Part shown: positions 19,023-53,561 of the stretch, one piece after another
Position numbering within the stretch: position 1 is the stretch's first letter
How the letters are laid out: each line of letters opens with the position of its first letter
The notes under the pieces: model-generated
The model's input: only the letters and a program-made list of their open reading frames with translations
Databases searched by the model: none
What the model was told of the DNA's origin: nothing
Made by a program: the position numbers and the translations under genes
Source: Anaeramoeba ignava BMAN
Lineage: Eukaryota; Protista; Anaeramoebae
Length of the DNA stretch: 64,000 nt
Direction: 5' to 3'
NCBI GenBank assembly: GCA_028826165.1
Contig: JAPDFW010000059.1
Coordinates: 1,736,001-1,800,000 of the forward strand

Positions 19023-22000
19023 TTATTTTTTAGAAAAAGCATAAAGTTTATCAGCCAATTTAATAAGTTTATCATGAAATTCAATATCTTGATAATTAAT
19101 TTTAGGGACATTTTTGAAACCATAAAAAGCACCAAACCAAGCAGAAGCCAAAATACCAATTGAATCAGAATCACCTTCATTCAAGTATCTCATGCATAAT
19201 TCAGGCCAATTATCTTGAGCAGCCAGAAGACAATCCCAAGCAATTAATGGGGCATCATGACCAGAACTTCCACCCCAACCGCTAAAAGAAACTGATTTAA
19301 TCCAAGCATCTCTGACCTTAATATTATCATAATTATCAGGCCATTTAATTGATTCAAAAGATGGTTTCTCAATATCAAGGTTTCTTTCATGGAGATAAGT
19401 TTTCCATTTTTCAATAAAAAAATCCATTTTCTTTATATTTGAATCAACATCTCTTCCGCTTGATTTGATATATTCAACAACAAGTGGTATAATTTCGTTT
19501 ATAAGTTTTTTTCCCCATTCATATATCGGAATTTTGTTAATTGCATATGCTGTGAAAAGTGCTCCAGCAACTGAACCTAAATATCCAACTGGGTTATTAT
19601 GTGTCATTCTTCCACTTTCAACTGATACTGATATTAATTTTCGAATATCTGTTTCTAAATTGGGAAAAGCTAAACCAATAGGAGTGCTTCTCATTCTATT
19701 TTATCAATTAATTTTTAATTTTAATTTTTAATTTTTATTTTAATTTTAATATTAAATTTTGATTTTAATTTTAATTTTAATTTAAATTTTAATTTTATTT
19801 TTAATTTTAATTTGAATTTTAATTTTAATTTTAATTTTGATTTTAATTTCATTCTATAATTAATTTTATTTTAAATTTTGATTTTAATTTTAATTTTAAT
19901 TTTGATTTTAATTTTAATTTTAATTTTAATTTTAATTTTAATTTTAATTTTAATTTTAATTTTAATTTTAATTTTAATTTTAATAATATTAATTTTAATT
20001 TTAATTTTAATTTAAATTTTAATTTTAATTTTAATTTTAATTTTAATTTTGATTTTAATTTTAATTTTAATTTTAATTTTAATTTTAATTTTAATTTTAA
20101 TTTTTAATTTTAATTTAAATTTCATTCTATAATTAATTTTATTTTAAATATTGATACGCTGCACCACAACCACCTCCTCTTGAATTAAAAGATAATTTAT
20201 CCCAAAGTTTTGGAACATTTCTTGAAATAAAATTAACACCAGAAATACAACTACCACCTGGAGCTCTACCTGCCATATCATTAAAACATTCAACATATTG
20301 TTCTCCAATATGAATATATATATATTCATCAATTGGAAGATAATCGGTTTTTTTCTTTTCTGGTTCTTTTTTTTTTTCCTTTTCTTTTTCATTTATTGTT
20401 GGAATTAATATAATATTCTTTCTTAATTGATCTTCAAAATTTTCTTCTTTTTTTTCTTCTTCTTCTTTTTTTTCTTGATTATCTTTTTTCTCTTCTTCTT
20501 TTTCTTGTACAATTCCTTCTGCAGTTGCAATCATCATTACCTTATTAAAAATGAAAATCAATTTTTAATTTTGATTTTAATTTTAATTTTAATTTTAATT
20601 TTGATTTTAAATTTAATTTTAATTTTAATTTTAATTTTAATTTTAATTTTAATTTTAATTTTAATTTTTAATTTTGATTTTGATTTAAATTTTAGTTTTA
20701 GTTTTAATTTTAATTTTAATTTTAATTTTGATTTTAATTTTAGTTTTAATATATAAATTTAATACAGTATCATCACTAACTCTCCATTTTGATCCTCTTA
20801 ACTCTAAAGCTGTTATTCCTTTTCCATCTGTAATTCTCATTAAATCTGCATGAATACTTTCAGTAGAATAATCAAATTCATATCTTCCACCATGATATCC
20901 AAGTGCATCTCCTAGTAAATTTTATTTTAAATTTTATTTTAAATTATTATAAATTTTATTTTAAATTTTATTATAAATTTTATTATAAATTTTGTTTTAA
21001 ATTTTGTTTTAAATTATTATAAATTTTATTTTAAATTTTATTATAAATTTTATTATAAATTTTATTATAAATTTTATTTTAAATTTTGTTATAAATTTTA
21101 TTATAAATTTTATTATAAATTTTGTTTTAAATTTTGTTTTAAATTTTGTTATAAATTTTATTATAAATTTTATTATAAATTTTGTTATAAATTTTATTAT
21201 AAATTTTATTATAAATTTTGTTATAAATTTTATTTTAGATTTTATTTTAAATTTTATTATAAATTTTATTATAAATTTTATTATAAATTTTATTATAAAT
21301 TTTATTATAAATTTTATAAAGCAAGGAATATTTAAGTGATAAAAGAAATTTTTTTGTAAGTGATGATTTTTCGCATTAGCAACAAAAAAATTAATTAAAG
21401 AAAAATTTTTCTCCTTTAGAAATTTTTTGGTTTTGAAAAAGAATACATTTCCAGGATTTAAGTTTGATTTTTATGTGCAGTTTTGGACTTAGTTTGATTT
21501 ATTCTGTGGAAAATTTGCATCAATTGGTTGGTGAAAAAAATAAAATGAAAAAGAAAGAATTTAAGCAATTCTGTTGCAAGAAAAGATTTTGAAAAGAGAT
21601 TAAATTTTGTTTTTGATTTGTTTTGATTGATTTTATTTTAGATTAAAATTGAATAAAAAAATATGAAAAAAAAAGTTTTTTGAAAGAAGAAAAATTAAAC
21701 TGAAAGGAATCAGAGTGGTGATCAATGAAGGAAAGAAGAAGATGAAAATAGATGAAGAGTGAAAGAGTGAGAAAAGGTAAGAGGAAAGAAAATAAATTGG
21801 AAATAGTAAGGGGAATAGATAAGTGAAAAGTGAAAAAAAATAATTAAGAGCATGATCAGTGAAGTGAGAGATAAGGAAAGGTTCGAATGATTGACATCTC
21901 GTCATCTCCGCGCACGCAAGCGGCGCTCCGTGACTCGATTGTCATCATCCGAACCTTTCAAAGAAATTAAAAAAAAATCCAAATTTAATTCTAAAAACAA

Positions 22001-25000
22001 TTGATTATTGCAATCCTCAATGATATCTTTGAAAACATTAAAATTGGTACTAATAAAAAAATATAAGGTGAGTATTTTGAAACAATATGTAAAGGATCAG
22101 ATAGATCCAAACCCAACTAAAGGATCCTTTTTGAAACCAAAAAATATCTATGAAAATTTCAGATGAAGAAAGCAATAGGCAATATTTTCTTGTTTTGTTT
22201 CCAAATTTTTTGAGGTGTGAAACGTTTTCCGATTTAATTGATTTTAAATTGATTTTAAATTGGTTTTTAAATTGGTTTTTAAATTGGTTTTAAATTGGTT
22301 TTAAATTGATTTTAAATTGGTTTTTAAATTGGTTTTTAAATTGATTTTAAATTGATTTTAAATTGGTTTTTAAATTTTTTAAATTGGATTTTAAATTGAT
22401 TTTAAATTGATTTTAAATTGATTTTTAAATTGATTTTAAATTGATTTTAAATTGGTTTTTAAATTGGTTTTAAATTGATTTTAAATTGGATTTTTAAATT
22501 GGATTTTAAATTGGGTTTTAAATTGGTTTTAAATTGGTTTTTAAAATTGGTTTTAAATTGGATTTTTTAAATTTTTTTAAATTGATTTTTAAATTGGTTT
22601 TAAATTGATTTTAAATTGGTTTTTAAATTGATTTTAAATTGGATTTTAAATTGATTTTAAATTGGTTTTTAAATTGGGTTTTTAAAATTGGATTTTTAAA
22701 TTGATTTTTAAATTTTTAAATTGGTTTTAAATTTGGTTTTAAAATTTTTTTTTAAATTGATTTTAAATTTTTTAAATTGGTTTTTAAATTGGTTTTAAAT
22801 TGATTTTAAATTGATTTTAAATTGGTTTTAAATGGTTTTTTTTAAATTGGTTTTTAAATTGATTTTTAAATTGGTTTTTAAATTGATTTTTTAAATTGGT
22901 TTTAAATTGATTTTAAATTTTTTAAATTGGATTTTAAATTGTTTTTAAATTGATTTTAAATTGGATTTTAAATTGATTTTAAATTTTAAAAATTTTAAAT
23001 TGGTTTTTAAATTGTTTTAAATTTTTTAAATTGGTTTTAAAATTGGATTTTAAATTGATTTTAAATTGGTTTTTAAATTGGTTTTAAATTGGTTTTAAAT
23101 TGGTTTTTAGAAATTGATTTTTAAATTGGTTTTTTTGGATTTTAAATTGGTTTTTTTTTAAATTGGTTTTTAAATTTTTAAATTGGTTTTTAAATTGGTT
23201 TTAAATTGATTTTAAATTGGATTTTAAATTGGTTTTAAATTGTTTTTAAATTGGTTTTTTTGGTTTTAAATTGGATTTTTTAAATTGGTTTTAAAATTAA
23301 ATTGATTTTTAAATTGGTTTTTAAATTGGTTTTTTTAAATTGGTTTTTAAATTGGTTTTAAATTTTAAATTGGATTTTTAAATTGGTTTTAAATTGGTTT
23401 TTAAATTGGTTTTAAATTGGTTTTAAATTTGGTTTTTAAATTGATTTTTGATTTTTAAATTGATTTTTTTGGATTTTAAATTGGTTTTAAATTTTTTAAA
23501 AATTGGTTTTTAAATTGGTTTTTAAATTGGTTTTTAAATTGGTTTTTAAATTGATTTTTAAATTTGGTTTTTAAAATTGATTTTAAATTGGATTTTAAAT
23601 TTAAATTTTTAAATTGATTTTAAATTGATTTTTAAATTTTTTAAATTGGTTTTTAAATTTGATTTTAAAATTGGTTTTAAAATTGGTTTTTAAATTGGTT
23701 TTTTTAAATTGGTTTTAAATTGATTTTTAAATTGGTTTTTAAATTGGATTTTAAATTGGATTTTAAATTGGTTTTTAAATTGATTTTTAAATTGATTTTA
23801 AAATTGGTTTTTTGGTTTTAAATTGATTTTAAAATTTTTGATTTTAAATTGGATTTTTTAAATTGGATTTTAAATTGGTTTTAAATTGGTTTTAAAATTG
23901 ATTTTTAAATTGGTTTTAAATTGATTTTAAATTGATTTTAAATTGATTTTTAAATTGATTTTAAATTGATTTTAAATTGGTTTTTAAATTGGTTTTAAAT
24001 TGATTTTAAATTGATTTTAAATTGGTTTTAAATTGGTTTTTAAATTGATTTTAAATTGATTTTAAATTGATTTTTAAATTGATTTTTAAATTGATTTTAA
24101 ATTGGTTTTAAATTGGTTTTTAAATTGGATTTTAAATTGGTTTTTAAATTGGATTTTAAATTGGTTTTTAAAATTTTTAAAATTTTAAATTGGATTTTAA
24201 ATTGGTTTTTAATTTGTTTTTAAATTTTTTAAATTGATTTTAAAATTGGATTTTAAATTGGTTTTTAAATTTTTTAAATTGATTTTAAAATTTTAAATTG
24301 GTTTTTAAATTGTTTTTAAATTTTTTAAATTGGGTTTTTAATTGGGTTTTAAATTGATTTTTAAAATTGGATTTTAAATTGGTTTTAAATTGATTTTAAA
24401 TTGGTTTTAAATTGGTTTTAAATTGATTTTAAATTGATTTTTAAATTGGTTTTAAATTGGTTTTAAATTGGATTTTAAATTGGATTTTAAATTGATTTTA
24501 AATTGATTTTAAATTGATTTTAAATTGGTTTTTAAATTGGTTTTAAATTGATTTTAAATTGATTTTTAAATTGGTTTTAAATTGATTTTAAATTGGATTT
24601 TAAATTGATTTTAAATTGGTTTTAAATTGATTTTAAATTGATTTTAAATTGAGTTTTAAATTGGTTTTAAATTGATTTTAAATTGATTTTAAATTGGTTT
24701 TTTAGGAGGTGTGATTTTAAATTGGTTTTAAAATTGGATTTTTAAAATTTTAAATTGATTTTTGATTTTAAATTGGTTTTTAAATTGGTTTTAAATTGAT
24801 TTTTAAATTGGTTTTTAAATTTTTGGGTTTTTAAATTGATTGGTTTTTAAATTGATTTTTTAAAATTTTAAATTGATTTTAAATTGGTTTTAAATTGATT
24901 TTAAATTGATTTTTAAATTGATTTTTAAATTGATTTTTTTTGTTTTAAATTGGTTTTAAATTGGTTTTTAAATTGGTTTTTAAATTTTTTAAATTGGTTT

Positions 25001-28000
25001 TTAAATTGATTTTAATTGGTTTTTAAATTGGTTTTTAAAATTGATTTTTTAAATTGTTTTTAAATTGGTTTTTAAATTGGTTTTAAATTGGATTTTTAAA
25101 TTGATTTTAAATTGGTTTTAAATTGATTTTTTTTAAATTGGTTTTAAAATTTTTAAATTGGTTTTAAATTGGATTTTAAATTGATTTTTAAATTGATTTT
25201 AAATTGGTTTTTAAATTGGTTTTTAAATTGATTTTAAATTGGTTTTAAATTGATTTTAAATTGGTTTTAAATTGATTTTAAATTGATTTTAAATTGGTTT
25301 TTAAATTGATTTTAAATTGGTTTTTAAATTGGTTTTAAATTGATTTTAAATTGGTTTTTAAATTGATTTTTAAATTGATTTTAAATTGATTTTTAAATTG
25401 ATTTTTGATTTTTAAATTGGTTTTTAAATTGATTTTTAAATTGGTTTTTAAATTGGTTTTTAAATTGATTTTTAAATTGATTTTAAATTTTGGATTTTTA
25501 AATTGATTTTAAATTGATTTTAAATTGGTTTTTAAATTGATTTTAAATTGATTTTAAATTGGTTTTTAAATTGATTTTTAAATTGGATTTTTAAATTGAT
25601 TTTAAATTGGTTTTAAATTGATTTTAAATTGATTTTAAATTGGTTTTAAATTGATTTTTAAATTGGTTTTAAATTGGTTTTAAATTGGATTTTAAATTGG
25701 ATTTTAAATTGATTTTAAATTGATTTTTAAATTGGTTTTTAAATTGGATTTTAAATTGATTTTAAATTGGTTTTTAAAATTGATTTTTAAATTGGTTTTT
25801 GATTTTTTTAAATTGATTTTAAATTGGTTTTTAAATTTTAAATTGATTTTTAAATTGGATTTTAAATTGGATTTTTAAATTGATTTTAAATTGATTTTAA
25901 ATTGATTTTTAAATTGATTTTAAATTGGTTTTTAAATTGATTTTAAATTGGTTTTAAATTGGTTTTTAAATTGGTTTTAAATTGGTTTTAAATTGATTTT
26001 AAATTGGTTTTTAAATTGGTTTTTTGGTTTTAAATGGTTTTTTAAATTGGTTTTAGGGTTAAGGTTTTTAAATTGATTTTTAAATTGGTTTTTAAATTGA
26101 TTTTAAATTGATTTTAAATTGAATTTTAAATTGGTTTTTAAATTGATTTTGATTTTTAAATTGGTTTTTAAATTGATTTTAAAAATTGATTTTAAATTGA
26201 TTTTTTTTTAAATTGATTTTTAAATTGTTTTAAATTTGGTTTTTAAATTGATTTTTAAATTTTAAAATTTTTTGATTTTTAAAATTGATTTTAAATTGTT
26301 TTTTAAATTGATTTTAAATTGATTTTTTAAATTGGTTTTTAAAATTGGTTTTTAAATTGATTTTAAATTGTTTTTTAAATTGATTTTAAATTGGTTTTTT
26401 AAATTGATTTTTAAAATTTTTGGTTTTAAATTTTTAAAATTTTAAATTTTAAATTGATTTTTATAAATTGATTTTTAAATTGATTTTAAATTTTTTTAAA
26501 TTGGTTTTTAAATTGGTTTTTAAATTGGTTTTAAATTGATTTTAAATTGATTTTTAAATTGGATTTTAAATTGATTTTAAAATTTTTAAATTGGATAAAA
26601 TTTTAAATTGATTTTAAATTGGTTTTTAAATTGATTTTAAATTGGTTTTTAAATTGATTTTAAATTGATTTTAAATTGTTTTTAAATTGGTTTTAAATTT
26701 GATTTTTAAATTGATTTTTAAATTTTAAATTGATTTTAAATTGGTTTTAAATTTTTTAAATTGGTTTTAAATTGATTTTTAAATTGTTTTTAATTTGATT
26801 TTAAATTGATTTTAAATTTGATTTTAAATTGGTTTTTAAATTGATTTTAAATTGGTTTTTAAATTGGATTTTAAATTGGATTTTAAATTGATTTTTAAAT
26901 TGGTTTTTAAATTTGGTTTTTAAATTGGATTTTAAATTGATTTTAAATTGGTTTTAAATTGATTTTAAATTGATTTTAAATTGGTTTTTAAATTGATTTT
27001 AAATTGATTTTAAATTGGTTTTAAATTGATTTTAAATTGATTTTTAAATTGATTTTAAATTGATTTTAAATTGATTTTTAAATTGATTTTAAATTGATTT
27101 TAAATTGATTTTAAATTGGTTTTAAATTGGATTTTAAATTGGTTTTTAAATTGGTTTTAAATTGGATTTTAAATTGGTTTTAAATTGATTTTAAATTGAT
27201 TTTAAATTGATTTTAAATTGATTTTAAATTGATTTTAAATTGATTTTAATTTGATTTTAAATTGATTTTAAATTGGTTTTTAAATTGGATTTTAAATTGA
27301 TTTTTTAAAATTGGTTTTAAATTTGATTTTTAAATTGGTTTTTAAATTGATTTTAAAATTGATTTTTAAATTGATTTTTAAATTGGATTTTAAATTGATT
27401 TTAAATTGATTTTTTTAAATTAAATTGATTTTAAATTGGTTTTAAATTGATTTTTAAATTGGTTTTAAATTGATTTTTAAATTGGATTTTAAATTGGATT
27501 TTAAATTGATTTTAAATTGATTTTAAATTGATTTTAAATTGGATTTTAAATTGGATTTTTAAATTGATTTTTAAATTGGTTTTAAATTGATTTTAAATTG
27601 ATTTTAAATTGGTTTTTAAATTGATTTTAAATTGATTTTAAATTGGATTTTTTAAATTGATTTTTAAATTGATTTTTAAATTGATTTTAAAATTGATTTT
27701 TAAATTGATTTTAAATTTTAAATTGATTTTTAAATTGATTTTAAATTGATTTTAAATTGATTTTAAAATTTTTGATTTTAAATTTTTTAAATTGATTTTA
27801 ATTTGGTTTTTAAATTGATTTTTAAATTGATTTTAAAAAATTTTAAATTGATTTTTAAATTGATTTTAAATTGATTTTTAAATTGATTTTTAAATTTTAA
27901 ATTTTTTAAATTGATTTTTTTTTAAAAAAATTGATTTTAAATTGATTTTTAAATTGATTTTTAAATTGGTTTTAAATTGATTTTAAAATTGGTTTTTAAA

Positions 28001-31000
28001 TTGATTTTAAATTGATTTTTAAATTGATTTTTTAAATTGATTTTTTAAATTGGATTTTAAATTGGTTTTTAAATTGATTTTTAAATTGATTTTTAAATTG
28101 ATTTTAAATTTTTTTAAATTGGTTTTAAAATTATTTTTAAATTTTAAATTGATTTTAAATTGATTTTTAAATTGGTTTTAAATTGGTTTTTAAATTGATT
28201 TTAAATTGATTTTTAAATTGGTTTTAAATTGGTTTTAAATTGATTTTAAATTGATTTTAAATTGGATTTTAAATTGGTTTTAAATTGATTTTAAATTGAT
28301 TTTAAATTGGTTTTTAAATTGATTTTAAATTGATTTTAAATTGATTTTTAAATTGATTTTAAATTGGTTTTAAATTGATTTTAAATTGATTTTTAAATTG
28401 GTTTTAAATTGATTTTAAATTGATTTTAAATTTGGTTTTTAAATTGATTTTTAAATTGATTTTAAATTGATTTTAAATTGATTTTAAATTGGTTTTTAAA
28501 TTGATTTTAAATTGATTTTAAATTGATTTTAAATTGATTTTAAATTGATTTTTAAATTGGTTTTAAATTGGTTTTAAATTGATTTTTAAATTGATTTTAA
28601 ATTGATTTTAAATTGATTTTAAATTGATTTTAAAATTGTTTTTAAATTGATTTTAAAATTTTTTAAATTGATTTTAAATTGGTTTTGATTTTAAATTGGT
28701 TTTTTTGATTTTAAATTGATTTTAAATTGATTTTAAATTTTTTTAAATTTTTTAAATTGATTTTAAATTGATTTTAAATTGGTTTTTTTAAATTGATTTT
28801 TTTAAATTGGTTTTTAAATTGATTTTTAAATTGGTTTTAAATTGATTTTAAATTTTGATTTTTAAATTGATTTTAAATTGATTTTAAATTGGTTTTTAAA
28901 TTGATTTTAAATTTTTTTTAAATGATTTTTTTTTTAAATTGATTTTTAAATTTTAAATTGATTTTAAATTGATTTTAAAAATTGATTTTTAAATTGGTTT
29001 TAAATTGATTTTAAAAATTGATTTTAAATTGATTTTAAATTGGTTTTAAATTGATTTTAAATTGGTTTTAAATTGATTTTAAATTGATTTTAAATTGGTT
29101 TTAAATTGATTTTAAATTGATTTTAAATTGTTTTTAAATTGATTTTAAATTTATTTTAAATTGATTTTAAATTGATTTTAAAATTTTTTGTGATTTTTAA
29201 ATTGATTTTAAATTGGGGGGATTTTTTAAAATTGGTTTTAAATTGATTTTTAAATTGATTTTAAATTGATTTTAAATTGATTTTAAATTGGTTTTAAATT
29301 GATTTTAAATTGATTTTAAATTGGTTTTTAAATTGATTTTAAATTGGTTTTAAATTGGTTTTTAAATTGATTTTAAATTGATTTTAAATTGGTTTTAAAT
29401 TGATTTTAAATTGATTTTAAATTGGTTTTTAAATTGATTTTAAATTGGTTTTTAAAAAATTGGTTTTAAATTGATTTTTTTAAATTGGTTTTAAATTGAT
29501 TTTAAATTGGTTTTTAAATGGTTTTAAATTGATTTTAAATTGGATTTTAAATTGGTTTTAAATTGGTTTTAAATTGGTTTTAAATTGATTTTAAATTGAT
29601 TTTAAATTGGATTTTAAATTGGTTTTTAATTGGTTTTAAATTGGATTTTAAATTGGATTTTTAAATTGATTTTAAATTGATTTTGAACTAATTTTCGTGT
29701 TAGATTTATCCACTCTTTTGCATTTTTTCGGAATTGTTTGAATTTATTAGTTTTCCACCCCTTTTTATTTGGATTTTAATCGAGTTTATTGTAGTTAAAA
29801 TGTAGGATTATTGATTTTTTTGTAGAAATGATATTAAAAAGTGGAAATAATTGGATATTTTTCGGAAATCTTTTTGCAAAATGAGAAGCGAAAAGATTGG
29901 CATGCAATCGAATTAAAAATGAAAACCGAAAATGAATGAGTTCAAATATTTTATATTTCCAAGAAGGGAAATGAAAAATGAAAAATGAAAAATAAGCTAA
30001 CAAAGCCAACAGAAAAAAATTTTTTTTATCATTTTTTATCATTTTTTTTCTTCTTTTTTAAGTTTTGTATGCAAAATCGATCAAATTGCTGGTTTTCAAG
30101 CGCCAATAACTATATAGAACATATATATTCAGAAAAGAGTTATGGAGGTGTTCAAGTATGTGCTAGCTGTTGGGCAAAACTAATCAAAAAGGTATTAAAA
30201 AATTTTCCTGTTCAGATAAAAATGAATATCACAACGAAAAATAGCAATCATCTCGATTTTTGAGGGAAGCATGAATGAAACTTTTTTTTTCATGTATTCA
30301 TGCCTCTTCATCACTTTTTGTTTTTCAAAATCAAGAAATAAATGAAAAACCAAAATTCAATTTTTTGATTCTTAATGAAAAAGGGTTGGATTTCCCATGA
30401 ATTTTAATAATGATCTAAGTTGATTTTTCTTGAAAAAAAATACGCAAAACAATGGCCATTGGGGAATCAATAAATAAAAATATGAGAGGGAGAAAGAAAA
30501 CAACCAGGAGAAAAAAAAATTTTTTTTCATAAATAACAAAAAAATATTAAAATATAAGTTCAATCTAACCAAAACTCATTTATACTAAAAATTTTTACTT
30601 TTTTATTTATTTAGTTAAAAGAAAATGAAAAACTAAAACAATTGGAAAAATGCCAAGCTGATCTGGAAAAGGCCAAAGAAAAAATCATATGGTTAAAAGG
30701 AGAATTAAGAAAAAATAAATATCAAAAAAACGAAAAAATCAAAGAAAATAAGCGCCTCGATAGACAAATTGAAATAAAAACTAATTATAGTAAAAAGCTC
30801 CTCGAAACCAAAAAAAAATTATCGGAAAAAAACCAAGATCTTAAAAAAAAAAAAAAAAAAATCGCAAATGAATTGGAGAAAACAAAAAAAGAAATTGGAA
30901 CAACAGAAAACCCCTTGATCGTGGAGTTACGACAAGAAAAAGACAAAAGAATGTATGAAGATTCTTATAGTAAGATTGTTTCACAAGTTGCTTGTTTCAC

Positions 31001-34000
31001 ACTTTCTCAAACGGCTGCTGCGGAAAGTATGAAGGCTTTCTTGTATTGGATTGAGGATTTTTTATTTGAGAAATATAAATTCTCAATAAATATCGAACCC
31101 AAAACGTTACACGCCCAAACCGTAGCGGAATTTATCAAAGACTCAGCTTTCAAATTAGACCTTGTAACAAAAGAGGCTTTGAGAAGAACAAAATATTGGG
31201 CAATTGCCGTGGATGAAACAAAACGATACCAAATTCGTTTACTTGCAATTGTAATTTGGATAAGAGCGACAAAACAAAATAATGAAAATAATGAAAATGA
31301 AAATAATGAAAATAATGAAAATAATGAAAATAATGAAAATAATGAAAATAATGAAAATGAAAATATTATTGAAAATAATGAAAATGAAAATATTATTGAA
31401 AATAATGAAAATGAAAATAATATTGAAAATAATGAAAATGAAAATAATATTGAAAATAATAAAAATAATATTGAAAATAATATTGAAAATAATGAAAATG
31501 AAAATAATATTGAAAATAATATTGAAAATAATATTGAAAATAATATTGAAAATGAAAATAATATTGAAAGTAATATTGAAAATAATGAAAATAATGAAAA
31601 TAACGATCCAAATAAAAAAATTAAAAAAACTTTGTGGAAAAGAGGAAAAAAAAAGTTTTTCATGGTATCAAGAAAAATGGTACCCAGAGTTATTGCTGTA
31701 TGTGAAATATCAAAGGGGGATGCGAAAGCCATTTTTAACAAAATAACAAAGGCTATAGAAGAAATTATGAAACAAGGAATGAATAATGATGAGACTCTAG
31801 ATCTCAATGATATTTATGCCAAATGCACTTATTTCTTATCAGATAATTGTGTAACAATGATTGGAAAACTTGGTGGTCTCGCCAAACTGATAGGAGATTA
31901 TATAAATTCAATTAAAAATAATGAAAGTTTTTTACAAGTTGGGTGTTTAGAGCATCAGGGAAATCTGATTTATGCTCATTTTTCGTTGACCATTTTTCCT
32001 TCTGATTCTCGACAAATGAACAAATTTTTCAAATTAGCTCAGCTTACTTCTACTCAACTGAATAAAAATGGAGCTTTTCAGGCCTGGTTATTATTAAAAT
32101 TTGAAACCAGAAATCTTGAAGGACCTCGTGTTTCCGCTACAAGATTTGGGACTGAAGCCATTCAATTTTGTTCTTTGTTGTCGTTTTACCCGAATATGAT
32201 TGAGTGGGTGGAAGAGAATACGGACACGAAATCAGATGAGATTCTTGAACTCTTGTTAGATTATAAGTTTTCATTTTCTGTTTTGATTATCGGTATCTCG
32301 TGGCTCGTTTGGTATGGGTCATTTATTACTCAGATCAATCAAGAGATGAAAGTATGTGAATTGGAGAATATTATCAATGAATTAATTGGTCAAGGAGAAA
32401 AAATCGCAAATATTGAAGAAAATTTTTTCGATAAATTTGTGGGCATGTTCAAAAACACTAAAAAAGTGGAAAAAGAAGTTGGAATATTAAAAGCACTTTG
32501 GGATGAAGGAGAAATGAAATTAAAGAAATTGAGAAAAGAAAAAAATATGGAATACGATAAATTGGAAATTGAAAGAAAAATAGTCTGTACATTTGGCCAA
32601 AAATTTTCAGGAGTTTTTAAGGATTTTTCAAAAAATCTGATCCAAATGCCTGACTTAGTGGATAAAAATCAACTGATTGTACCATCCAACAAATTTGTAG
32701 AAGGGATTTTTTCAAATTGTGAAAGGCAGATGAGTAAAGGCCTGCATATGAAAAATAAAAATTTAGATAGCGCTCTCAAAAATAGCCAGTATCACCGTGA
32801 TCAAAAAGACGGGATATTTACCGATTTGTACGACACTGTAGAAAAAAATTCGGGAAGGAAATCAAGAAATAAGATGAGAAGACAAAGTGAGGATTCACAA
32901 GTTTTTTTAGAAAGGGATAAAATAAATGAGGAAAAATTAAAAATTCAAATGGAAAAAGAAAAGGAAAATGTCAGGAAGATAGCAAATTCTCAAAAAGGTC
33001 AAAACTCAAAAGATAAGAATCAACAAAAGATGCCCAAATCTCAAAAAATGGAGAAGAAAAAAAGAAAAGAGAATTCTGACGCCCTTGGTTTGGACCAACT
33101 CAATGACCAAATTAATGAATTTAGTTCTCAAATAGGAAGAAGACGAATAACCCGCTCTTTCTCTCAATCCCAAAGAACTTTAGCAATCACTGAGAGCAAG
33201 AAGGAATCCACAAATAATTTGTGAGCATTTTAAACACTCTGAGTTTCCATTCAAGGCTCAAAAAAGAAAGAGGAATGCCTGATTAAGATTTCTTGATCTT
33301 CTTGGCAATTTTGAATCGAAAACAGTGAATAACCCAGAGAATGAGATTCGTTGCTTCATTGAAGGAATAATCTTGGCGTAAAGAAATGGTTATAAGACGA
33401 TTAGATTGTAAAAAAGATCAAGAGAAAATTCTGATAATTGAAATGAAATCTACTCATAGTTTCACTTCCCACCTTGAATTCGCAACTCCACATGCTATAA
33501 TGAGAATCATCAAATCAGCTATCCAATAATCCATCTCAATCATCCGATAGAACCTTTTTCGTCTCACAAAAATTATGCTGAATCTCCCCAAAAGAAAATT
33601 CTCTTCTCCAAAAGTAATTCTTTAGAGAAGGAAAAAAATATTCAATGTTTTTGAGTTTACATCCTGGAATCAGAAGATGAAATTAGCAAATGAGATTCAT
33701 AAAAAAGGATTTCCTTGAGATTCAAAGCAGCATCACTTTATCAAATCAATATCAAAAAAGGCTCAAGTTCATCTGAATTGCCCCTCTCAGCAATTGATCA
33801 TTCATGACTAGTCGTGTAATCCCATAAATGGACATATGAGGGTCTTGTATAATGGAAAATAAAAGATTTTTTTGAAACAATATTGCTTGCCAATAGTCCA
33901 CTCAAGGTACTACTGAAAAAAAAAATAAAACAAGAATATTTCTTCCTAATTAGAAAGTATTTTTCCAGGATATACAGCCAAAAGCCAATAATTCATTGAT

Positions 34001-37000
34001 TCAAATCTTCTCAATTGTCTTAAAGGGATGATAGATGAAAAAAAATGTAATTCATTTTTATTAAAGGAAAAATGGTGATGGGAGAACTCTTTATCAGATG
34101 TAATGCAATTCACAGTGAATTATTCTTCGTTTAAAAAAAGATTATGTCCTTTAATGCTTGATGAAAATGTAGTTAAAATACAAGCAACCTGCTAATATAA
34201 TTCCAAGAAAATGTTCAAATAAAGGAAAGAGGTGTTATCTATTGAAGAAGATGAAAAGGTATTTTTTTTATCCAATATCATTCACTACTCCTACTTGGTA
34301 CAAATCTGTCTTCGTTTTGAGAATTGAAAAATGGAGAACCTCATGTTTCATAACTAATCAAGTCTCCCAATTTAAACAGAAAACAATGAATTTGGGGATT
34401 TCCTCATTTCAGATGAGATATTCCTTTTTCTAAAATGTCAATTTCCCCCCTTATTATTAATCAACTTTGTTACAAGCGACTTGTTTAATCCCAAATTTTC
34501 TGGGATATACAAAAATTCAGAAAATTGCCATTAAGATGAAAATATTTTTTTAGATGGAAACCAATAATATATAGCACTTTGACCCTTCGACTACTTGATT
34601 CTTTGACTCTTTGACCCTTTTACTCTTTTACTCTTTGATTCTTTGATTCTTTGATTCTTTGATTCTTTTATTCTTTTATTCTTTGATTCTTTGATTCTTT
34701 GATTCTTTGATTCTTTGATTCTTTGATTCTTTGATTCTTTGATTCTTTTACTCTTTGGTTCTTTGATTCTTTGACTCTTTAATTCTTTGATTCTTTGATT
34801 CTTTGATTCTTTGATTCTTTGATTCTTTGATTCTTTGATTCTTTGATTCTTTGATTCTTTGATTCTTTGATTCTTTGATTCTTTGATTCTTTGATTCTTT
34901 GATTCTTTAATTCTTTTACTCTTTGACTCTTTGATTCTTTGATTCTTTGATTCTTTTACTCTTTGACTCTTTGACTCTTTGATTCTTTGATTCTTTGATT
35001 CTTTTGATTCTTTTACTCTTTGATTCTTTGACTCTTTGATTCTTTGATTCTTTTGACTCTTTGATTCTTTGATTCTTTGATTCTTTAATTCTTTTATTCT
35101 TTAATTCTTTGATTCTTTGATTCTTTGATTCTTTGATTCTTTGATTCTTTGATTCTTTGACTCTTTGATTCTTTGATTCTTTGACTCTTTGATTCTTTGA
35201 TTCTTTTGATTCTTTGATTCTTTGATTCTTTGATTCTTTGATTCTTTGATTATTTGATTCTTTTGATTCTTTGATTCTTTGATTCTTTGACTCTTTGATT
35301 CTTTGACTCTTTGATTCTTTGACTCTTTGATTCTTTAATTCTTTGATTCTTTGATTCTTTTACTCTTTGATTCTTTGATTCTTTGATTCTTTGATTCTTT
35401 GATTCTTTGATTCTTTGATTCTTTGATTCTTTGATTCTTTGATTCTTTTACTCTTTGACTCTTTGACTCTTTAATTCTTTGATTCTTTGATTCTTCGATT
35501 CTTTGACTCTTTGATTCTTTGACTTTTTGATTATTTTATTTTTTAATTCTTTGACTCTTTGATTCTTTGATTCTTTGACTCTTTGACTCTTTGATTCTTT
35601 GATTCTTTGATTCTTTGATTCTTTACTCTTTGATTCTTTGATTCTTTGATTCTTTGACTCTTTGATTCTTTGATTCTTTGATTCTTTGATTCTTTGATTC
35701 TTTGATTCTTTGATTCTTTGATTCTTTGATTCTTTGATTCTTTTGACTCTTTGATTCTTTGATTCTTTTGATTCTTTTGATTCTTTTGACTCTTTGATTC
35801 TTTTGATTCTTTGATTCTTTTGATTCTTTGATTCTTTGATTCTTTGACTCTTTGATTATTTGATTCTTTGATTCTTTTACTCTTTGACTCTTTGATTCTT
35901 TGATTCTTTGATTCTTTGATTCTTTGATTCTTTGATTCTTTGATTCTTTGATTCTTTGATTCTTTGATTCTTTGATTCTTTGACTCTTTGATTCTTTGAT
36001 TCTTTGATTCTTTGACTCTTTGATTATTTTTGATTTTTATTCTTTGATTCTTTGATTCTTTTATTCTTTGACTCTTTGATTCTTTGACTCTTTGATTATT
36101 TGATTCTTCGATTCTTTGACTCTTTGACTCTTTGATTCTTTGACTCTTTAATTCTTTGATTATTCGATTCTTTTACTCTTTGACTCTTTGATTCTTTGAC
36201 TCTTTGATTCTTTGATTCTTTTACTCTTTGACTCTTTGATTCTTTTACTCTTTGACTCTTTGATTAATTCTTTGATTCTTTCGATTCTTTTACTCTTTGA
36301 CTCTTTGACTCTTTGATTCTTTGACTCTTTGATTCTTTGATTCTTTGACTTTTTGATTATTTTATTTTTTAATTCTTTGACTCTTTGATTCTTTTACTCT
36401 TTGACTCTTTGACTCTTTGACTCTTTGATTATTTGATTCTTCGATTCTTTTACTCTTTGACTCTTTGATTCTTTGACTCTTTGATTCTTTGATTATTTTA
36501 TTTTTTAATTCTTTGACTCTTTAATTCTTTGACTCTTTAATTCTTTGACTCTTTGATTCTTTCACTCTTTGACTCTTTAATTCTTTGACTCTTTGATTCT
36601 TCGATTCTTTGACTCTTTGACTCTTTGATTATTTGACTCTTTGATTATTTTATTTTTTAATTCTTTGATTTCGGAAATTTGTCTCAATGGATGAGTGAGT
36701 GAAAGGGCGAGTAAGTAAGTGAGTAAGGGAAAGGGTTGGTGAGTAAGTGAGCAAGGGAAAGGGTGAGCGAGATCGGGTTCTGTTCCAAATTTGTTTCGGA
36801 ATAGGGGAATTTCAAGGTTTGGGTTTGAATTTTGAAAATTTCCATTTGAAAAGATTCATTTTTTTTTTGTTTGGGGAAGTTAGTGATTATTTTGAAATTT
36901 GTTTTTTTTTGAGATTCTAAAAGGAAGGTGGATCGAAATTTCATAAATCAGAACAAGACCCTCTCTAAACCCCAATTTATGAACGATTTTTTCAAAAGCA

Positions 37001-39592
37001 TTCGTGCATTTTTTTTCTCCAAAACGATATTACTCCTGTTTATATCTTTGAGACCACCAATGAATTCCAATTTTCCTTTGAGTTGTATTAACAAATTTCT
37101 TTTCGCATCCCCTAAATTCATCTGGCAATTGCCCAATATTTATTACAAGAAATTAAATTGCGAACTTTGTGCATAATTGATTTGAAAAGAAAAAAAGAAA
37201 AAAAAAGAAAAAAACCAAAATTTGGGTACATTCTTGGGTATTCTTTGTAACTCTTTCTGATGAATATGCTTTTTCAAAAAACAAATCTTTCATCTTTTTC
37301 TTTTTCTTTTTTTTGTTTTTGTTTTTGTTTTTGTTTTTGTTTTTGTTTTTGTTTTTGTTTTTGTTTTTGTTTTTGTTTTTGTTTTTCTCAATCAATAAAG
37401 TTTGCGAAAACCTTTTTTTAACCAACTCAAAAAAGCATTTTGAAAAAACTCACAATTTGAAAGAGAAGATCAAATGAAAAAACATTTTTCTTGATCAGAG
37501 AAAACAAAACGAACACTTTTTTGGGAAAATATAATTGGAGGATATTATAAATTTTGGTAATTTGGGAATAAATGATGGAAAAAGAGATCCAAAAAGCAAA
37601 AAGAAGTTCCTTCAAATATAAAAAAAATCAATAAAGGAAACAAGGAATTTGAACCAAAAAGTCAAAATTTAACACAAAGATAAAAAATTTAAAATTAATT
37701 CTGTTGTAAAATGATTGCTCTCATTACGGAAAAGAACATGATCCAACTTTGTGATTTTTTTTCCAAATAGAAAGGAAAAATGTACCGAAAGAAGAGTAAA
37801 ATCAAAAACAAGAAAAACTTTTCTTTTTGGTTGTTGATAAATACACCAGAAAAGATATGAATTTATAAACAAAGAGATGAATCAAAAAAAAAAGTAAGTG
37901 ATTTATAAATGAAAAAAAAAAGGAGAAAAATTAAAAATTCTTTAATTAATTTTTTTTGTTGTTAATGCGAATTTTTCTAATTCAAAAATTTTTTCTTTTA
38001 AAAAAAAAAATTTCACTAGATATTCCTTGCTTTAAAATTTTATTATAAATTTTGTTATAAATTTTGTTATAAATTTTGTTTTAAATTTTGTTATAAATTT
38101 TGTTTTAAATTTTATTATAAATTTTATTATAAATTTTGTTATAAATTTTATTATAAATTTTGTTATAAATTTTATTATAAATTTTATTTTAAATTTTATT
38201 ATAAATTTTATTATAAATTTTATTATAAATTTTGTTTTAAATTTTATTATAAATTTTATTATAAATTTTATTATAAATTTTGTTTTAAATTTTATTATAA
38301 ATTTTATTATAAATTTTGTTATAAATTTTATTATAAATTTTGTTATAAATTTTATTATAAATTTTTGTTATAAATTTTGTTTTAAATTTTTGTTATAAAT
38401 TTTATTTTAAATTTTGTTATAAATTTTGTTATAAATTTTATTATAAATTTTTGTTTTAAATTTTGTTATAAATTTTATTATAAATTTTGTTTTAAATTTT
38501 TATTTTAAATTGTTTTAAATTTTATTTTAAATTTTATTATAAATTTTATTATAAATTTTATTATAAATTTTGTTATAAATTTTATTATAAATTTTATTTT
38601 AAATTTTATTATAAATTTTATTATAAATTTTATTATAAATTTTATTATAAATTTTATTATAAATTTTATTATAAATTTTATTATAAATTTTAATTATAAA
38701 TTTTATTTTTAAATTTTATTATAAATTTTATTATAAATTTTATTATAAATTTTGTTATAAATTTTATTATAAATTTTATTATAAATTTTATTATAAATTT
38801 TATTATAAATTTTATTATAAATTTTATTATAAATTTTATTATAAATTTTATTATAAATTTTGTTATAAATTTTATTATAAATTTTATTATAAATTTTATT
38901 ATAAATTTTATTATAAATTTTATTATAAATTTTGTTATAAATTTTTTATTATAAATTTTATTATAAATTTTATTATAAATTTTGTTATAAATTTTATTAT
39001 AAATTTTATTATAAATTTTATTATAAATTTTATTATAAATTTTATTATAAATTTTATTATAAATTTTATTTTAAATTTTGTTATAAATTTTGTTATAAAT
39101 TTTGTTATAAATTTTATTATAAATTTAATTATAAATTTTGTTTTTAAATTTTGTTATGAATTTTATTATAAATTTTGTTATAAATTTTATTATAAATTTT
39201 TATTATAAATTTTGTTATAAATTTTATTTTAAATTTTATTATAAATTTTGTTTTAAATTTTGTTATAAATTTTATTTTGAATTTTGTTATAAATTTTATT
39301 ATAAATTTTATTATAAATTTTATTATAAATTTTATTATAAATTTTATTATAAATTTTGTTTTAAATTTTATTATAAATTTTGTTATAAATTTTGTTATAA
39401 ATTTTGTTATAAATTTTGTTATAAATTTTGTTTTAAATTTTATTATAAATTTTATTATAAATTTTGTTATAAATTTTGTTTTAAATTTTGTTATAAATTT
39501 TATTTTAAATTTTGTTATAAATTTTATTTTAAATTTTTACCAACTGCTCCTAAAATCATTGATGCTCGATAATTTTCAACTAAATCTTCCAT
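19023..39592 (-). CDS. ADP-ribosylarginine hydrolase-like (ARH1/ADP-ribosylglycohydrolase). Exons 39592-39541, 20911-20766, 20540-20158, 19695-19023
   Basis: Spliced product [18 protein letters not shown]|[12 protein letters not shown]...VSDDT|VMMIAT...GRAPG...GCGAA|MR...THNNP...GHDAP...GDSDS. All three GT..AG introns are phase-consistent. Intron 1 is 20912-39540. Confidence 0.92.
19710..20140. repeat. (TTTTAA)n microsatellite in ARH intron 3; a similar tract is in intron 2 (about 20560-20750)
   Basis: Direct hexamer repeats. Confidence 0.9.
20917..21316. repeat. 12-bp (ATAAATTTTATT)n intron minisatellite, left part
   Basis: Same unit as 38035-39538, interrupted by the transposon. Confidence 0.9.
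21876..21959. other. GC-rich hairpin (inverted repeat) inside the transposon left arm
   Basis: GAAAGGTTCGAATGATTGACA pairs with TGTCATCATCCGAACCTTTC, plus inner GTCA/TGAC and GCGC-A-CGC/GCG-GCGC stems. Confidence 0.8.
22232..29685. repeat. About 7.4 kb satellite of 11-12 bp units (TTTTAAATTGA/TTTTAAATTGG) inside the transposon
   Basis: Continuous tandem array; noisy homopolymers. Confidence 0.95.
30069..33224 (+). CDS. hAT-like DDE transposase. Exon1 30069-30191, exon2 30615-33224 (about 910 aa)
   Basis: WAIAVDET (D1), [16 protein letters not shown] (D2), CLEH (CxxH), TRF and [11 protein letters not shown] (E). A phase-0 GT..AG intron joins a C/H/CxxC exon in frame. Confidence 0.82.
31278..31603 (+). 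repeat. N/E-encoding microsatellite inserted in the transposase core
   Basis: (AATAATGAA/AATATTGAA)n in frame. Confidence 0.9.
34577..36670. repeat. About 2.1 kb 8-bp satellite (CTTTGATT/CTTTGACT)n inside the transposon
   Basis: Tandem array. Confidence 0.95.
36775..37293 (-). pseudogene. Inverted, internally deleted relic of the element's own transposase core
   Basis: Colinear reverse-complement matches to about 31053-32159, including an 18-nt exact AAATATTGGGCAATTGCC. Confidence 0.75.
38035..39538. repeat. 12-bp (ATAAATTTTATT)n intron minisatellite, right part
   Basis: Tandem array up to the ARH exon1 donor at 39540. Confidence 0.93.
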
Positions 39593-39672: not shown

Positions 39673-41127
39673 ATGCAAACTTATTTAAATTTAGAAAAAC
39701 TTTCAAATGATTTAAAAAATTTATTTCAAAATCAAAATCAAAATGAGAATCAGAATGAAAGTTATTTTGATTTTGAAATAATTTGTGAACAAAATCAAAT
39801 TTCATTTAAAACTCATAAATCAATTCTTTCATCAAGAAGTCAATATTTTAAATCTCTTTTTAAATCTAAAATGAAAGAATATCAAGAAAATAAATTAATT
39901 CTAAAAGATGTTTCAAGTTCAATTTTATTCCCAATTTTAAATTATTTTTATTCAGGAAAAATTGAAATTAATTTAGAAAATGCAATCCAAATTTTAATTT
40001 TTTCATCAAAATATTTAATTGATGAATTAATTGAAATTTCTTCAAGTTTTATCAAAAAGAATTTCCAAATTGAAACTATTGTTGATATTCTAAAATTATC
40101 TGAATCAATGAACCTAAATCAATTATTAGATCCTTCTTATCAATTTATTTTTGAAAATTTTGAAGAATTTATTAAAACTTCATTTTTTTTTGAACTTGAA
40201 GAAAATCATTTAAATTCAATTTTATTAAATGATGAACTTTCAATAAATGAATTTGAACTTTTCCAATCAATAATCAAATGGGGAAAACATAAATTAAATA
40301 TTAATCAAGAAAAAGAATTAGAAAAAGAAGAAAAAGAACAAATTCAAATTCAAATTTCAAATATTATTGATAAAATCAGATTTATTGATTTTACAAATAA
40401 AGAACTTAAAACTATTTTGAAAGAAGATTTAATTCCAAATCAAATTTCAGAAAAATTAATTCAATTCCAAAAACTTGATGAAAATGATAAAAATGAAAAA
40501 GAATTAAAACAATTTATTGAAAAAGAAAATTCATTAATTTTCAAATCAAGATTAGGTTTACATTCTTCATCAATAATAGAAGAAAAAAAACATTTCAATA
40601 AATTAAAAGAATGGATAAATGATGATGAATTCTTTTACAAAATGAAAAAAGGATATTCAGCTAAAAAAGATGGATTTGATTCTAAGAAATGGCATTCATC
40701 AGTTGATAACAAAGGAAAAACATTAGTTATTATCAAAACCAAAGATAATTATATTTTTGGAGGATTTACTCAAATTGGATTTATTTCCGATCAAGAATTT
40801 TGGGAATCAAAAGATTCAGGAGGAGGATGGATTAAAGATATAAATGCATTTATTTTTTCATTAAGAAATGATAAGAATGATAGAAAACCTTCAAAATTTG
40901 AAATTAAACAAGGAGGAAGAAGTGCACTTTTTTATCGTTTAAATTGTGGACCTAAATTTGCAGGAGATATTGATTTAAATTCTAATCTTCAAGCTGGTTA
41001 TACAGAATTTGGATATATGTATCAACTTCCAAAAGGAATGCAACCTTATAAAGATGAAGCTAGAAATTATTTAGCTGGTTCTTATAATAAATGGATTATT
41101 GAAGAAGTTGAGACTTATTTCATTTAA
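39673..41127 (+). CDS. BTB-BACK-TLDc protein, copy 2 (intact)
   Basis: BTB (DFEII...HKSILSSRSQYFKSLF), BACK-like INEFELFQSIIKW, TLDc (DGFDSKKWH...TLVIIKT...IFGGFT...GPKF...EVETY). Confidence 0.92.
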   Translation: MQTYLNLEKLSNDLKNLFQNQNQNENQNESYFDFEIICEQNQISFKTHKSILSSRSQYFKSLFKSKMKEYQENKLILKDVSSSILFPILNYFYSGKIEINLENAIQILIFSSKYLIDELIEISSSFIKKNFQIETIVDILKLSESMNLNQLLDPSYQFIFENFEEFIKTSFFFELEENHLNSILLNDELSINEFELFQSIIKWGKHKLNINQEKELEKEEKEQIQIQISNIIDKIRFIDFTNKELKTILKEDLIPNQISEKLIQFQKLDENDKNEKELKQFIEKENSLIFKSRLGLHSSSIIEEKKHFNKLKEWINDDEFFYKMKKGYSAKKDGFDSKKWHSSVDNKGKTLVIIKTKDNYIFGGFTQIGFISDQEFWESKDSGGGWIKDINAFIFSLRNDKNDRKPSKFEIKQGGRSALFYRLNCGPKFAGDIDLNSNLQAGYTEFGYMYQLPKGMQPYKDEARNYLAGSYNKWIIEEVETYFI

Positions 41128-41172
41128 AAATTTTTTTCTTTTTTTCATTTTTCATTTTTTTCTTTTCAAAAA

Positions 41173-42987
41173 ATGAATGAAATTATATTTTTTGGTCAAA
41201 ATCAATCACCAATTCTTATCAAAAATAAACCAAATTCAATAACAAAACCAATTCAATTTAAATTTGAAAATGAAAATGAAAATAAAAATAAAAAACAAAT
41301 TAAACAAATTTCAACAAGTTTATCTGGAACAATTTTCCTTTTTAAAAATGGAAAAGCAATAGAATATTTAAATGAAGAAGATTCAAATCAAAATCCTCAA
41401 AAAATCCAAATTGAAGAAAATATTCAAAAAGTAACTGTTGGTTATCGAAATCAAGCTATTTTAACAATAGAAGGAAATGTATTTGCCAAAGGAAATAATA
41501 TTAATCCAAAAAATCCAAATGAATTTATCAATATTTCATCATTAATTAAAGATAAAAATGATAGAATAATTGAAGATGTTGTTTGTGGTGCTCAATCAAT
41601 TTACTTATTAACTTCAAATCAAACTGTTTATGGAATTGGCGATAATTATAATAATCAACTTGGTTTTGATTCTAAAACACTTAAAAAAACAGAAAAACCA
41701 ATTTTAATGATGAAAAATGTTTCTAAAATATTTTCAGGAAATTTGTCTTATCATGTTTTTCTTTTAAATTTAAATCAAGAATTATTTGGATGTGGTTGGA
41801 ATAATCACAGGCAACTTGGATTAGGAGAATCAAGAAAAGAAGCAAAAATCCAAAAATTAACCAAAATCCAAAATATTCCAAAAGGTAAAATAATTGATAT
41901 TCAATGTGGAAACTCTCATTCAATAATGTTGATTGAAAATGAAAATGAAAATGAAAATCCAAAAAGAAAACTTTATTCATGTGGAAATTGCCAATGGAAT
42001 GGACTTGGCAAACAAGATCAAGATTGCTATCAATTTACTGAAATCAAATCACCTTTATTTGAAAATGATAATATTCTTGAAATTTCTGTTGGATATGAAC
42101 ATACTTTGATTTTAACATCCAAAGGGAAACTAATAGTATTTGGAAATAATTCTTCTGGTCAATTAGGAACTGGAGATGGAAATGATTATTTAATTCCAAT
42201 TCAAATTGAACTTCCTAAATTAAGATTTAATGAAAATATTTCTAATTATCATATTTGTTGTGGAGATGAAAATTCATTTCTTTATTATTCTCCTTTTCTT
42301 TCTCCTTTTTCCAATCTTGAAGAAGATTTGATAAAATTATTTAGAAGAAAAGAATTTTGTGATATTTCATTTAAAACCGAAAATGGAGAAATAATTGAAG
42401 CTCATAAATTAATATTGAAATATAGATTAAATCAAAATCAAAATCAAATTGAAAAACTTCAAGAAATTATTTCAAAAAAATCAATTAAAGAATCAAATCA
42501 AATATTTGAAATGATTTATTCAAATAATTCCAAAATAAATCCAAAATTATATTCTGAAATTAAAGAAATTATAAATTCAAATGAAAAAATTGAAGAAACA
42601 ATGAAAAGAATTTATTTAAATGAAAATGAAAATGAAAATGAAAAAGATTTTATTATTGAAAGAAATGAAAAACAATATAAATTCCCTAAATTGATATTAA
42701 TAATGAGAAGTGAATTATATCGAGGAATGTTTTTATCTGTAACTGAAGATAAATCAAATAAAGTTACAGATTATAGTGAATTAAGTGAAGAATCATTCCA
42801 AATATTTGAATATTGGATTTATTCAAATCAAATTAAAGATGAAATTGAAATTACACAAGAAATTATTAATGAAATTAAAATTGGAATTGATTATTTTCAA
42901 TTAAATCAAACAAATCCAAATTTATTTGATTTATTAATTAAGAAATTTAATAATCAAAATCAAAAACAAAAATGTTTAATTTTTTGA
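41173..42987 (+). CDS. RCC1-repeat + BTB protein, copy 1
   Basis: Repeated GxNxxxQLG and HS/HT motifs; C-terminal BTB-like FCDISF...AHKLIL and RSELYRGMF. Confidence 0.9.
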   Translation: MNEIIFFGQNQSPILIKNKPNSITKPIQFKFENENENKNKKQIKQISTSLSGTIFLFKNGKAIEYLNEEDSNQNPQKIQIEENIQKVTVGYRNQAILTIEGNVFAKGNNINPKNPNEFINISSLIKDKNDRIIEDVVCGAQSIYLLTSNQTVYGIGDNYNNQLGFDSKTLKKTEKPILMMKNVSKIFSGNLSYHVFLLNLNQELFGCGWNNHRQLGLGESRKEAKIQKLTKIQNIPKGKIIDIQCGNSHSIMLIENENENENPKRKLYSCGNCQWNGLGKQDQDCYQFTEIKSPLFENDNILEISVGYEHTLILTSKGKLIVFGNNSSGQLGTGDGNDYLIPIQIELPKLRFNENISNYHICCGDENSFLYYSPFLSPFSNLEEDLIKLFRRKEFCDISFKTENGEIIEAHKLILKYRLNQNQNQIEKLQEIISKKSIKESNQIFEMIYSNNSKINPKLYSEIKEIINSNEKIEETMKRIYLNENENENEKDFIIERNEKQYKFPKLILIMRSELYRGMFLSVTEDKSNKVTDYSELSEESFQIFEYWIYSNQIKDEIEITQEIINEIKIGIDYFQLNQTNPNLFDLLIKKFNNQNQKQKCLIF

Positions 42988-43078
42988 AAAGAAATCAAAA
43001 TTTAAATTAAAATTAAAATTAAAATTAAAATTAAAAATTAAAATCATTTTTTCATTTTTCATTTTTTTCTTTTTAAAA

Positions 43079-44873: not shown

Positions 44874-45129
44874 AACAAAATTAAAATTAAATTTAAAATT
44901 AAAATTAAAAATCAAAATAAAAATTAAAATTAAAATTAAAATTAAAATTAAAATCAAAATTAAAATTAAAATTAAAATTAAAATCAAAATTAAAATCAAA
45001 ATTAAAATTAAAATTAAAATTAAAATTAAAATTAAAATCAAAATCAAAATTAAAAATCAAAATTCAAAATTAAAATTAAAATTAAAATTAAAATCATTTT
45101 TTCATTTTTCATTTTTTTCTTTTCAAAAA

Positions 45130-46949: not shown

Positions 46950-47022
46950 AATTAAAATTAAAAAATTAAAATTAATTTTTTCATTTTTTCATTTTTCATT
47001 TTTCATTTTTCATTTATTTTTG

Positions 47023-53406: not shown

Positions 53407-53561
53407 TTTTATTTTTATTAATAAAAAAATGAAAAAAATAAAAAATAAAAAATATTTTTTTTGAATTCTTTTTTTCATTTTTTCTCTTTTTGAATTTTTT
53501 AATCTTTCTCTTTTTTTTTTTCTTTAATCTTTTTCTATCTTTTTTTTTTTTAATCATTTTT

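Follow-up and report, generated by a model that had tools for sequence, protein, structure and literature searches.

A 64,000-nucleotide stretch of the genome of the anaerobic amoeba Anaeramoeba ignava BMAN (contig JAPDFW010000059.1 of assembly GCA_028826165.1, positions 1,736,001 to 1,800,000 of the forward strand; hereafter the window, in whose coordinates positions are given) raises the question of what has interrupted a 12-bp satellite array at 21317–38034. The initial annotation, made from the sequence alone, described the interruption as a giant hAT-like transposon with intact ends in an intronic minisatellite. The 16,718-bp insertion is a real transposon and most probably works like a hAT element. 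It is interpreted here as a class II (cut-and-paste) DNA transposon present in one copy in A. ignava BMAN and as either a member or a close ally of the hAT superfamily, a reading to which we assign a probability of roughly 0.68. Its DNA-level features and the motifs of its transposase are those expected of hAT elements, whereas the protein fails all statistical tests of homology. The hAT identity proposed initially is partly supported: the DNA-level features and the motif order agree with it, but no homology with statistical support links the protein to hAT or another transposase; the element is filed as a divergent variant allied to hAT rather than as a proven member.

The ends of the element carry much of this interpretation. 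The 15-bp terminal inverted repeat (TIR) TAAAGCAAGGAATAT at the left end recurs as its exact reverse complement at the right end, as established by direct reading and by script, and the 15-mer has two exact matches in the 42.8-Mb assembly (42,843,398 bases in 147 contigs), both at the ends of the element. It begins with TAAAG, which is consistent with the 5'-YARNG start of hAT TIRs. Outward extension of the repeat is blocked by an A facing an A, and inward a gapped, imperfect inverted repeat continues for about 100 bp on each side in a global alignment. Directly outside both TIRs lies the 8-mer AAATTTTA. Because this 8-mer belongs to the satellite unit itself, only the shift in register is evidence for a target-site duplication (TSD). 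Once the element and a single copy of the 8-mer are taken out by script, the satellite word AAATTTT is uniformly spaced by 12 over the joined flanks, and its spacing shows one 8-bp step when both copies of AAATTTTA are kept. A loss of 4 bp without duplication would yield the same register, but the 8-bp duplication is the simpler reading. Direct reading and script have thus borne out what was first noticed here: perfect TIRs starting with TAAAG, an 8-bp duplication, a satellite register restored by removal of the element with one copy, and hence a TIR-bounded insertion inside an intronic 12-bp satellite.

The sole long open reading frame (ORF) within the element is the putative transposase gene. 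It runs intact over 860 codons (30642–33224; residues are numbered from this start), a length that an open frame of this base composition would reach by chance with a probability of about 1e-37. An AG preceded by a T-rich tract (30613–30614) lies just upstream, and farther upstream a 92-codon ORF runs into a GT (30192–30193). Contigs from four public runs, three of them from the sample that probably yielded the assembly, were aligned to 29700–34590. In the fourth run, X3, one contig of 284 nt (depth 7.8, with 28 nt on the short side) contains the GT..AG joint from 30191 to 30615, which preserves the reading frame and fuses the upstream ORF with exon 2. X3 also has unspliced contigs spanning the intron, and the remaining gene sequence in this run is identical. 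The locus is read as a two-exon gene (29985–30191 and 30615–33224) that is transcribed and spliced, the support being the single contig. Residues 207–323 form an N/E/I-rich stretch that is missing from the decayed relics of the gene elsewhere in the genome, in which residue 201 is followed directly by residue 324. Since its periods are multiples of three and it is absent from the relics, the stretch is regarded as a coding repeat expansion rather than an intron.

The protein contains AVD191ETK, SD401NCVTMIGK, C435LEH438, TR501F502, and PSNKFVE687GIFS, the last in a PSxxxxExxFS context, and the long intact ORF has the D..D..CxxH..E order that the initial annotation named as typical of hAT. This order is the hAT block order and closest to that of Buster/Charlie-type sequences. 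D191 and D401 are separated by about 98 residues when the repeat is excluded, and D401 and E687 by 286, distances consistent with a DDE enzyme of hAT type that has a large insertion domain. It is reported that hAT enzymes have only a handful of residues in common, namely the DDE triad, CxxH, and aromatics near the active site (PMC4763223). The decayed relics, found on contigs C6/C61 and C35 and at a second site on C61, are 26–73% identical to the protein and keep exactly the blocks AVDETKR, SDNC, RC[LM]EH, and [TV]RF[GA]. C435xxH438 and R501-F502 are conserved in every relic covering those positions, the motifs around D191 and D401 are also conserved in relics, and E687 falls outside all of them. 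The relics at C6:96.0–102.3 kb and C61:396.2–403.2 kb lie in one segmental duplication, at least 6.3 kb long and 94–98.5% identical, that holds a transposase-family relic together with hsp70-like host DNA, and because these relics lack TIRs they provide no second TSD. The C6 contig ends inside this duplication, which may be an assembly duplicate.

No second copy and no miniature inverted-repeat transposable element or other short derivative was found genome-wide with the left 300 bp, three unique internal stretches, or the TIR pattern, and matches to the right end elsewhere are of low complexity and do not extend into its terminal 23 bp. The genome search with TIRs and transposase has accordingly turned up decayed relics without ends, but no further copies with TIRs, and the element at 21317–38034 is the sole copy with ends in the genome. 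Neither a second copy nor an empty site was seen. The earlier description of the element as recent and possibly autonomous is plausible, given that the ends are perfect, the two-exon gene is intact, and one contig is spliced. Separately, the sequence TAAAGCAATGAATAA, with two mismatches to the TIR, occurs about 200 bp apart in arrays on contigs C22, C24, C35, C6, and C33. Its likeness to the TIR is probably due to chance; alternatively, this satellite may derive from the ends of a related transposon.

The label "giant" given to the element holds for its length of 16.7 kb, but 9,536 of its 16,718 bp (57%) consist of two internal satellites, the rest amounts to about 7.2 kb, and there is no cargo; the unusual length is satellite growth. 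The array of the 11-bp unit AATTGATTTTA, in which the + strand is devoid of C, also has counterparts on several other contigs, whereas all 110 genome matches of the 8-bp unit TTGATTCT fall within the element. Typical hAT elements are 2.5–3 kb long with TIRs of 14–17 bp and TSDs of 8 bp (PMC12637253, PMC10368747), and the activity of Buster-type hAT elements drops as the load rises from 5 to 8.5 kb (PMC12637253). Because of this fall in activity with load, at least part of the growth of the arrays probably postdates insertion. Of the remaining parts, the left arm bears a G+C-rich hairpin that folds at -39 kcal/mol (z = -5.7) and that belongs to no Rfam family, is no tRNA, and has no further copy in the genome. 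In the right arm, the reading of 36775–37293 as a condensed version of the transposase core in inverted orientation is not supported, as unfiltered tblastn gave only Lys/Asn low-complexity matches.

Several results weigh against the assignment to hAT, foremost the absence of significant matches, in sequence or profile searches, to transposases of hAT or of any other kind. In Pfam searches, run with exons one by one and with fragments against a library without the newer hAT RNase-like models PF27046 and PF27073, Pfam-A gave nothing at E <= 10 for the 860-residue protein and its fragments, and no BED or other known DNA-binding domain appeared in exon 1 or the N-terminal part. Nothing was found among the PDB sequences, Hermes chains included, or in two word searches, and PF05699 and PF14291 gave nothing real across the whole genome. 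A phmmer search of 1.84 billion representative proteins returned two short fragments only, none outside the genome of A. ignava itself. A protein-language-model search scored the named clusters at 0.80–0.85, a range that the tool regards as no more than a lead, and the AlphaFold models, with predicted local distance difference test values of 37.5 (single sequence, residues 100–760) and 35.3 (five-row alignment, residues 326–745), are unusable. Within the motifs, Phe (F502) stands where the "RW" block of hAT has a conserved Trp. The single TSD AAATTTTA, which represents one site only, matches neither nTnnnnAn, the target preference of the hAT Ac branch (PMC10368747), nor nnnTAnnn of the Buster branch. 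With one copy, both mobility and TSD length are based on a single insertion, and the spliced contig comes from a run of another study, the kind of which is not on record.

Both phmmer fragments are gene models of the genome's own relics, NCBIfam contained nothing for the transposase protein, and metagenome and viral contigs yielded no relatives. Weak DUF4371 matches on contigs C8 and C98 were tried as transposase candidates and proved to be a HEAT/TOG-like host protein. The spacing of the Cys/His cluster in exon 1 differs from that of a BED finger, and BED fingers are not universal among hAT elements. The subterminal regions contain TTTGATT in six inward-oriented copies and TAAGTGAT in three, and neither is significant, as 270 and 1412 of 2000 shuffles, respectively, reach those numbers. 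In favour of hAT, every cluster bearing a Pfam annotation in the language-model search is of a hAT family (Dimer_Tnp_hAT, FAM200/GTF2IRD2-like, ZBED RNase-like, and DUF4371), and the top unnamed clusters score 0.93 and 0.91. The A. ignava genome is 80.65% A+T, with introns at 91.86%, and orthologues of two Anaeramoeba species are only 37% identical (PMC11550330). The failed searches can be explained by the extreme A+T bias and the fast evolution of the lineage.

Among known systems, the closest are the Buster/Charlie-like hAT elements, which include TcBuster and AnBuster and the domesticated ZBED5, FAM200, GTF2IRD2, and SCAND3. Common to both are the 8-bp TSD, the 15-bp TIRs, and the terminal TAAAG fitting YARNG. 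Buster-type transposases also share the D-E-T at the first Asp, the second Asp followed by xxxxMxGK, the CxxH, the Arg-aromatic pair, and PSxxxxExxFS, and Buster/Charlie-related families are the only named language-model matches. In contrast to Buster, the element shows no similarity at the level of hidden Markov models (HMMs) or BLAST, no detected BED finger, Phe for Trp, an Asn/Glu repeat, 112 residues long, that separates the second from the third of the putative core strands, an intron in the gene, no nnnTAnnn preference in the TSD, and a length of 16.7 kb rather than 2.5–3 kb (PMC12637253). Hermes, a hAT element of the Ac branch (2BW3, 4D1Q), resembles it in its short TIRs, 8-bp TSD, dissimilar subterminal ends of a few hundred bp, and a DDE core split by a large insertion with CxxH at the active site (PMC10368747, PMC4763223), the latter being read here from motifs. 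The element differs from Hermes in matching no PDB chain, in having no significant subterminal short repeats, and in a TSD that departs from nTnnnnAn.

If the hAT features are set aside, other DDE superfamilies bearing CxxH come into consideration. The D-D-CxxH-E order is common to P, Kolobok, and MULE elements, P elements likewise duplicate 8 bp, parabasalids, which are relatives of Anaeramoeba, carry P-like and Kolobok elements, and hAT profile matches are absent. However, although the element has in common with the P element and THAP9 an 8-bp TSD and, as read from motifs, a putative DDE core that contains an insertion domain, it shows no THAP domain, GTP-binding insertion domain, or P-element match in Pfam, and its TIRs measure 15 rather than 31 bp. 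The duplication of the 8-bp AAATTTTA differs from the TTAA of Kolobok and from the 9–11 bp of MULE/Mutator, and no MULE transposase domain was matched in Pfam, PF10551 and PF00872 included. The distance of 286 residues between the second Asp and the Glu and the PSxxxxExxFS ending suit hAT better, and the named language-model matches are all hAT, with none to P or MULE. Membership in one of these superfamilies is therefore rather improbable. Unlikely as well is that the element founds a separate, undescribed superfamily whose hAT-like ends, TSD, and motifs reflect ancestry too deep to assign or convergence. The lack of any match outside its own genome among 1.84 billion proteins, of any Pfam match, and of metagenome or viral relatives would agree with such a status, but motif order, spacing, TAAAG, the 8-bp TSD, and the hAT-only language-model matches concur on hAT, and A+T bias with fast evolution can account for the failed searches.

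More radical alternatives dissociate the ORF from the ends or deny mobility altogether. The TIRs might bound a non-autonomous or composite shell around a captured or unrelated gene, as repeats account for over half of the 16.7 kb, the ORF contains no domain that is recognised, and no second copy links the ORF to the ends. This is very unlikely, since the relics keep the DDE/CxxH-type motif set as far as they reach, the element has no other long ORF, and its unique parts occur nowhere else in the genome. That the inverted 15-mers and the 8-bp repeat arose by chance or rearrangement within the satellite draws on the presence of AAATTTTA in the satellite unit and on the 4-bp loss mentioned above. 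It is extremely improbable in view of an inverted repeat that is perfect over 15 bp, has no other match in 42.8 Mb, coincides exactly with both satellite breaks, and encloses about 100 bp of imperfect inverted repeat and a transposase-like gene. A different kind of proposal, which extends the hAT reading and which we entertain only tentatively, is that the element represents a deep, lineage-restricted hAT-like branch or a sister superfamily, invisible to current profiles and surviving as one expressed copy in a genome that ranks among the most A+T-rich of eukaryotes.

Under the hAT interpretation, the mechanism would be conventional. The sole gene, with two exons on the + strand, would encode a very divergent DDE-type transposase. 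By analogy with hAT enzymes, binding of this protein to the 15-bp inverted ends and to the subterminal regions of about 100 bp would be followed by excision via hairpins on the flanking DNA, with the CxxH and the aromatic residue after the conserved Arg possibly taking part. The two 3' ends would then be joined to the target across an 8-bp stagger, as in hAT transposition, resulting in the AAATTTTA duplication. The insertion would have entered a 12-bp satellite array occupying intron 1 of an ADP-ribosylhydrolase gene, which is encoded on the opposite strand, and the 7.5-kb and 2.1-kb arrays would have grown in the non-coding parts, with a smaller in-frame repeat inside the gene.

Table 1. Coordinates of the element, its putative gene, the interrupted host locus, and TIR-like arrays on other contigs.
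Feature	Location	Strand	Basis
Left TSD copy AAATTTTA	21309-21316	none	direct reading, script
Left TIR, 15 bp	21317-21331	+	direct reading, script
Left subterminal region, imperfect pairing with right end	21317-21416 (approximate)	+	global alignment
Unique left arm, contains G+C-rich hairpin	21317-22235		
G+C-rich hairpin island, 84 nt, perfect stem	21876-21959	none	folding
Satellite, 11-bp unit AATTGATTTTA, about 660 units, 7.5 kb	22236-29695	+	Tandem Repeats Finder (TRF)
Unique stretch with sole long ORF	29696-34594		
Putative exon 1, 69 codons if ATG at 29985 is used, Cys/His cluster, then GT donor	29985-30191	+	ORF and joint
Intron, 423 nt, GT..AG	30192-30614	+	one spliced contig
Exon 2, 869 codons and stop	30615-33224	+	ORF
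N/E/I-rich in-frame coding repeat, periods 12, 27, and 54 nt	31276-31603	+	TRF
Satellite, 8-bp unit TTGATTCT, about 259 units, 2.1 kb	34595-36670	+	TRF
Unique right arm with (TTTTTG)n run	36671-38034		TRF
Right subterminal region, imperfect pairing with left end	37919-38034	-	global alignment
Right TIR, 15 bp	38020-38034	-	direct reading, script
Right TSD copy AAATTTTA	38035-38042	none	direct reading, script
Host 12-bp satellite, left part	20916-21316	none	TRF
Host 12-bp satellite, right part, register same as left	38043-39537	none	TRF, script
Host ADP-ribosylhydrolase exon 1, 52 nt, 17 codons and one base	39541-39592	-	sequence reading
Host exon 2, after AG acceptor 20912-20913	20766-20911	-	sequence reading
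Host last large exon, C-terminal ADP-ribosylglycohydrolase domain	19023-19694	-	Pfam
TAAAGCAATGAATAA arrays	C22:48.7-75 kb, C24:51.7-54.8 kb, C35:149.7-151.9 kb, C6:36-38 kb, C33:0.1-0.8 kb		

The host gene is recognised by its last large exon, which matches PF03747 (E = 6e-28) at profile positions 127–286 of 287. As this exon covers only that part of the profile, the N-terminal part of the protein must be encoded at higher coordinates. The candidate exon 1 starts with ATG and ends in ...ILGAVG before a GT donor at 39540, and exon 2, which has no in-frame ATG, extends the frame of exon 1 into a G-DALG motif. Pfam was uninformative on exon 2 alone and too insensitive on single exons of this gene. 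Because the two exons join in frame, the element is predicted to lie in intron 1 of the host gene in antisense orientation. Intron 1 (20912–39540, minus strand) would thereby reach 18.6 kb with the element included. Annotated introns of A. ignava have a mode of 76 nt and a maximum of 4,168 bp according to the main text and supplement of the genome paper, in which RNA mapping was limited to introns of 10 kb (PMC11550330). Since the intron exceeds both the longest annotated intron and the mapping limit, exon 1 is likely missing or unlinked in the published annotation. Two further introns of the gene (19708–20147 and 20563–20763) are filled with the 6-bp satellites (TTAATT)n and (TTTTAA)n, and satellite-filled introns may be common in the genome, as judged from the one gene looked at. 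A cluster of BTB-domain genes occupies 39673–57400 of the window. It begins with a BTB-BACK-TLDc gene (39673–41127) on the opposite strand, 80 bp from host exon 1, followed by an RCC1-BTB gene (41173–42987) and more paralogues downstream.

The A. ignava genome paper describes no eukaryotic transposons (PMC11550330), and the element provides a clean example that is complete in its ends, its duplication, and an intact gene. It is neither a cargo-carrying giant nor evidence for the targeting of satellites by transposons, and its effect on the host gene is an 18.6-kb intron where the longest annotated one measures 4,168 bp. The case, from an under-studied lineage, indicates that a transposase can retain the hAT motif skeleton and yet fall below the detection limit of HMMs, and such hidden transposases matter when transposons are annotated in divergent protists of extreme base composition. 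If the element does represent a deep hAT-like branch, sequence-based censuses would undercount hAT-type transposons in fast-evolving protists.

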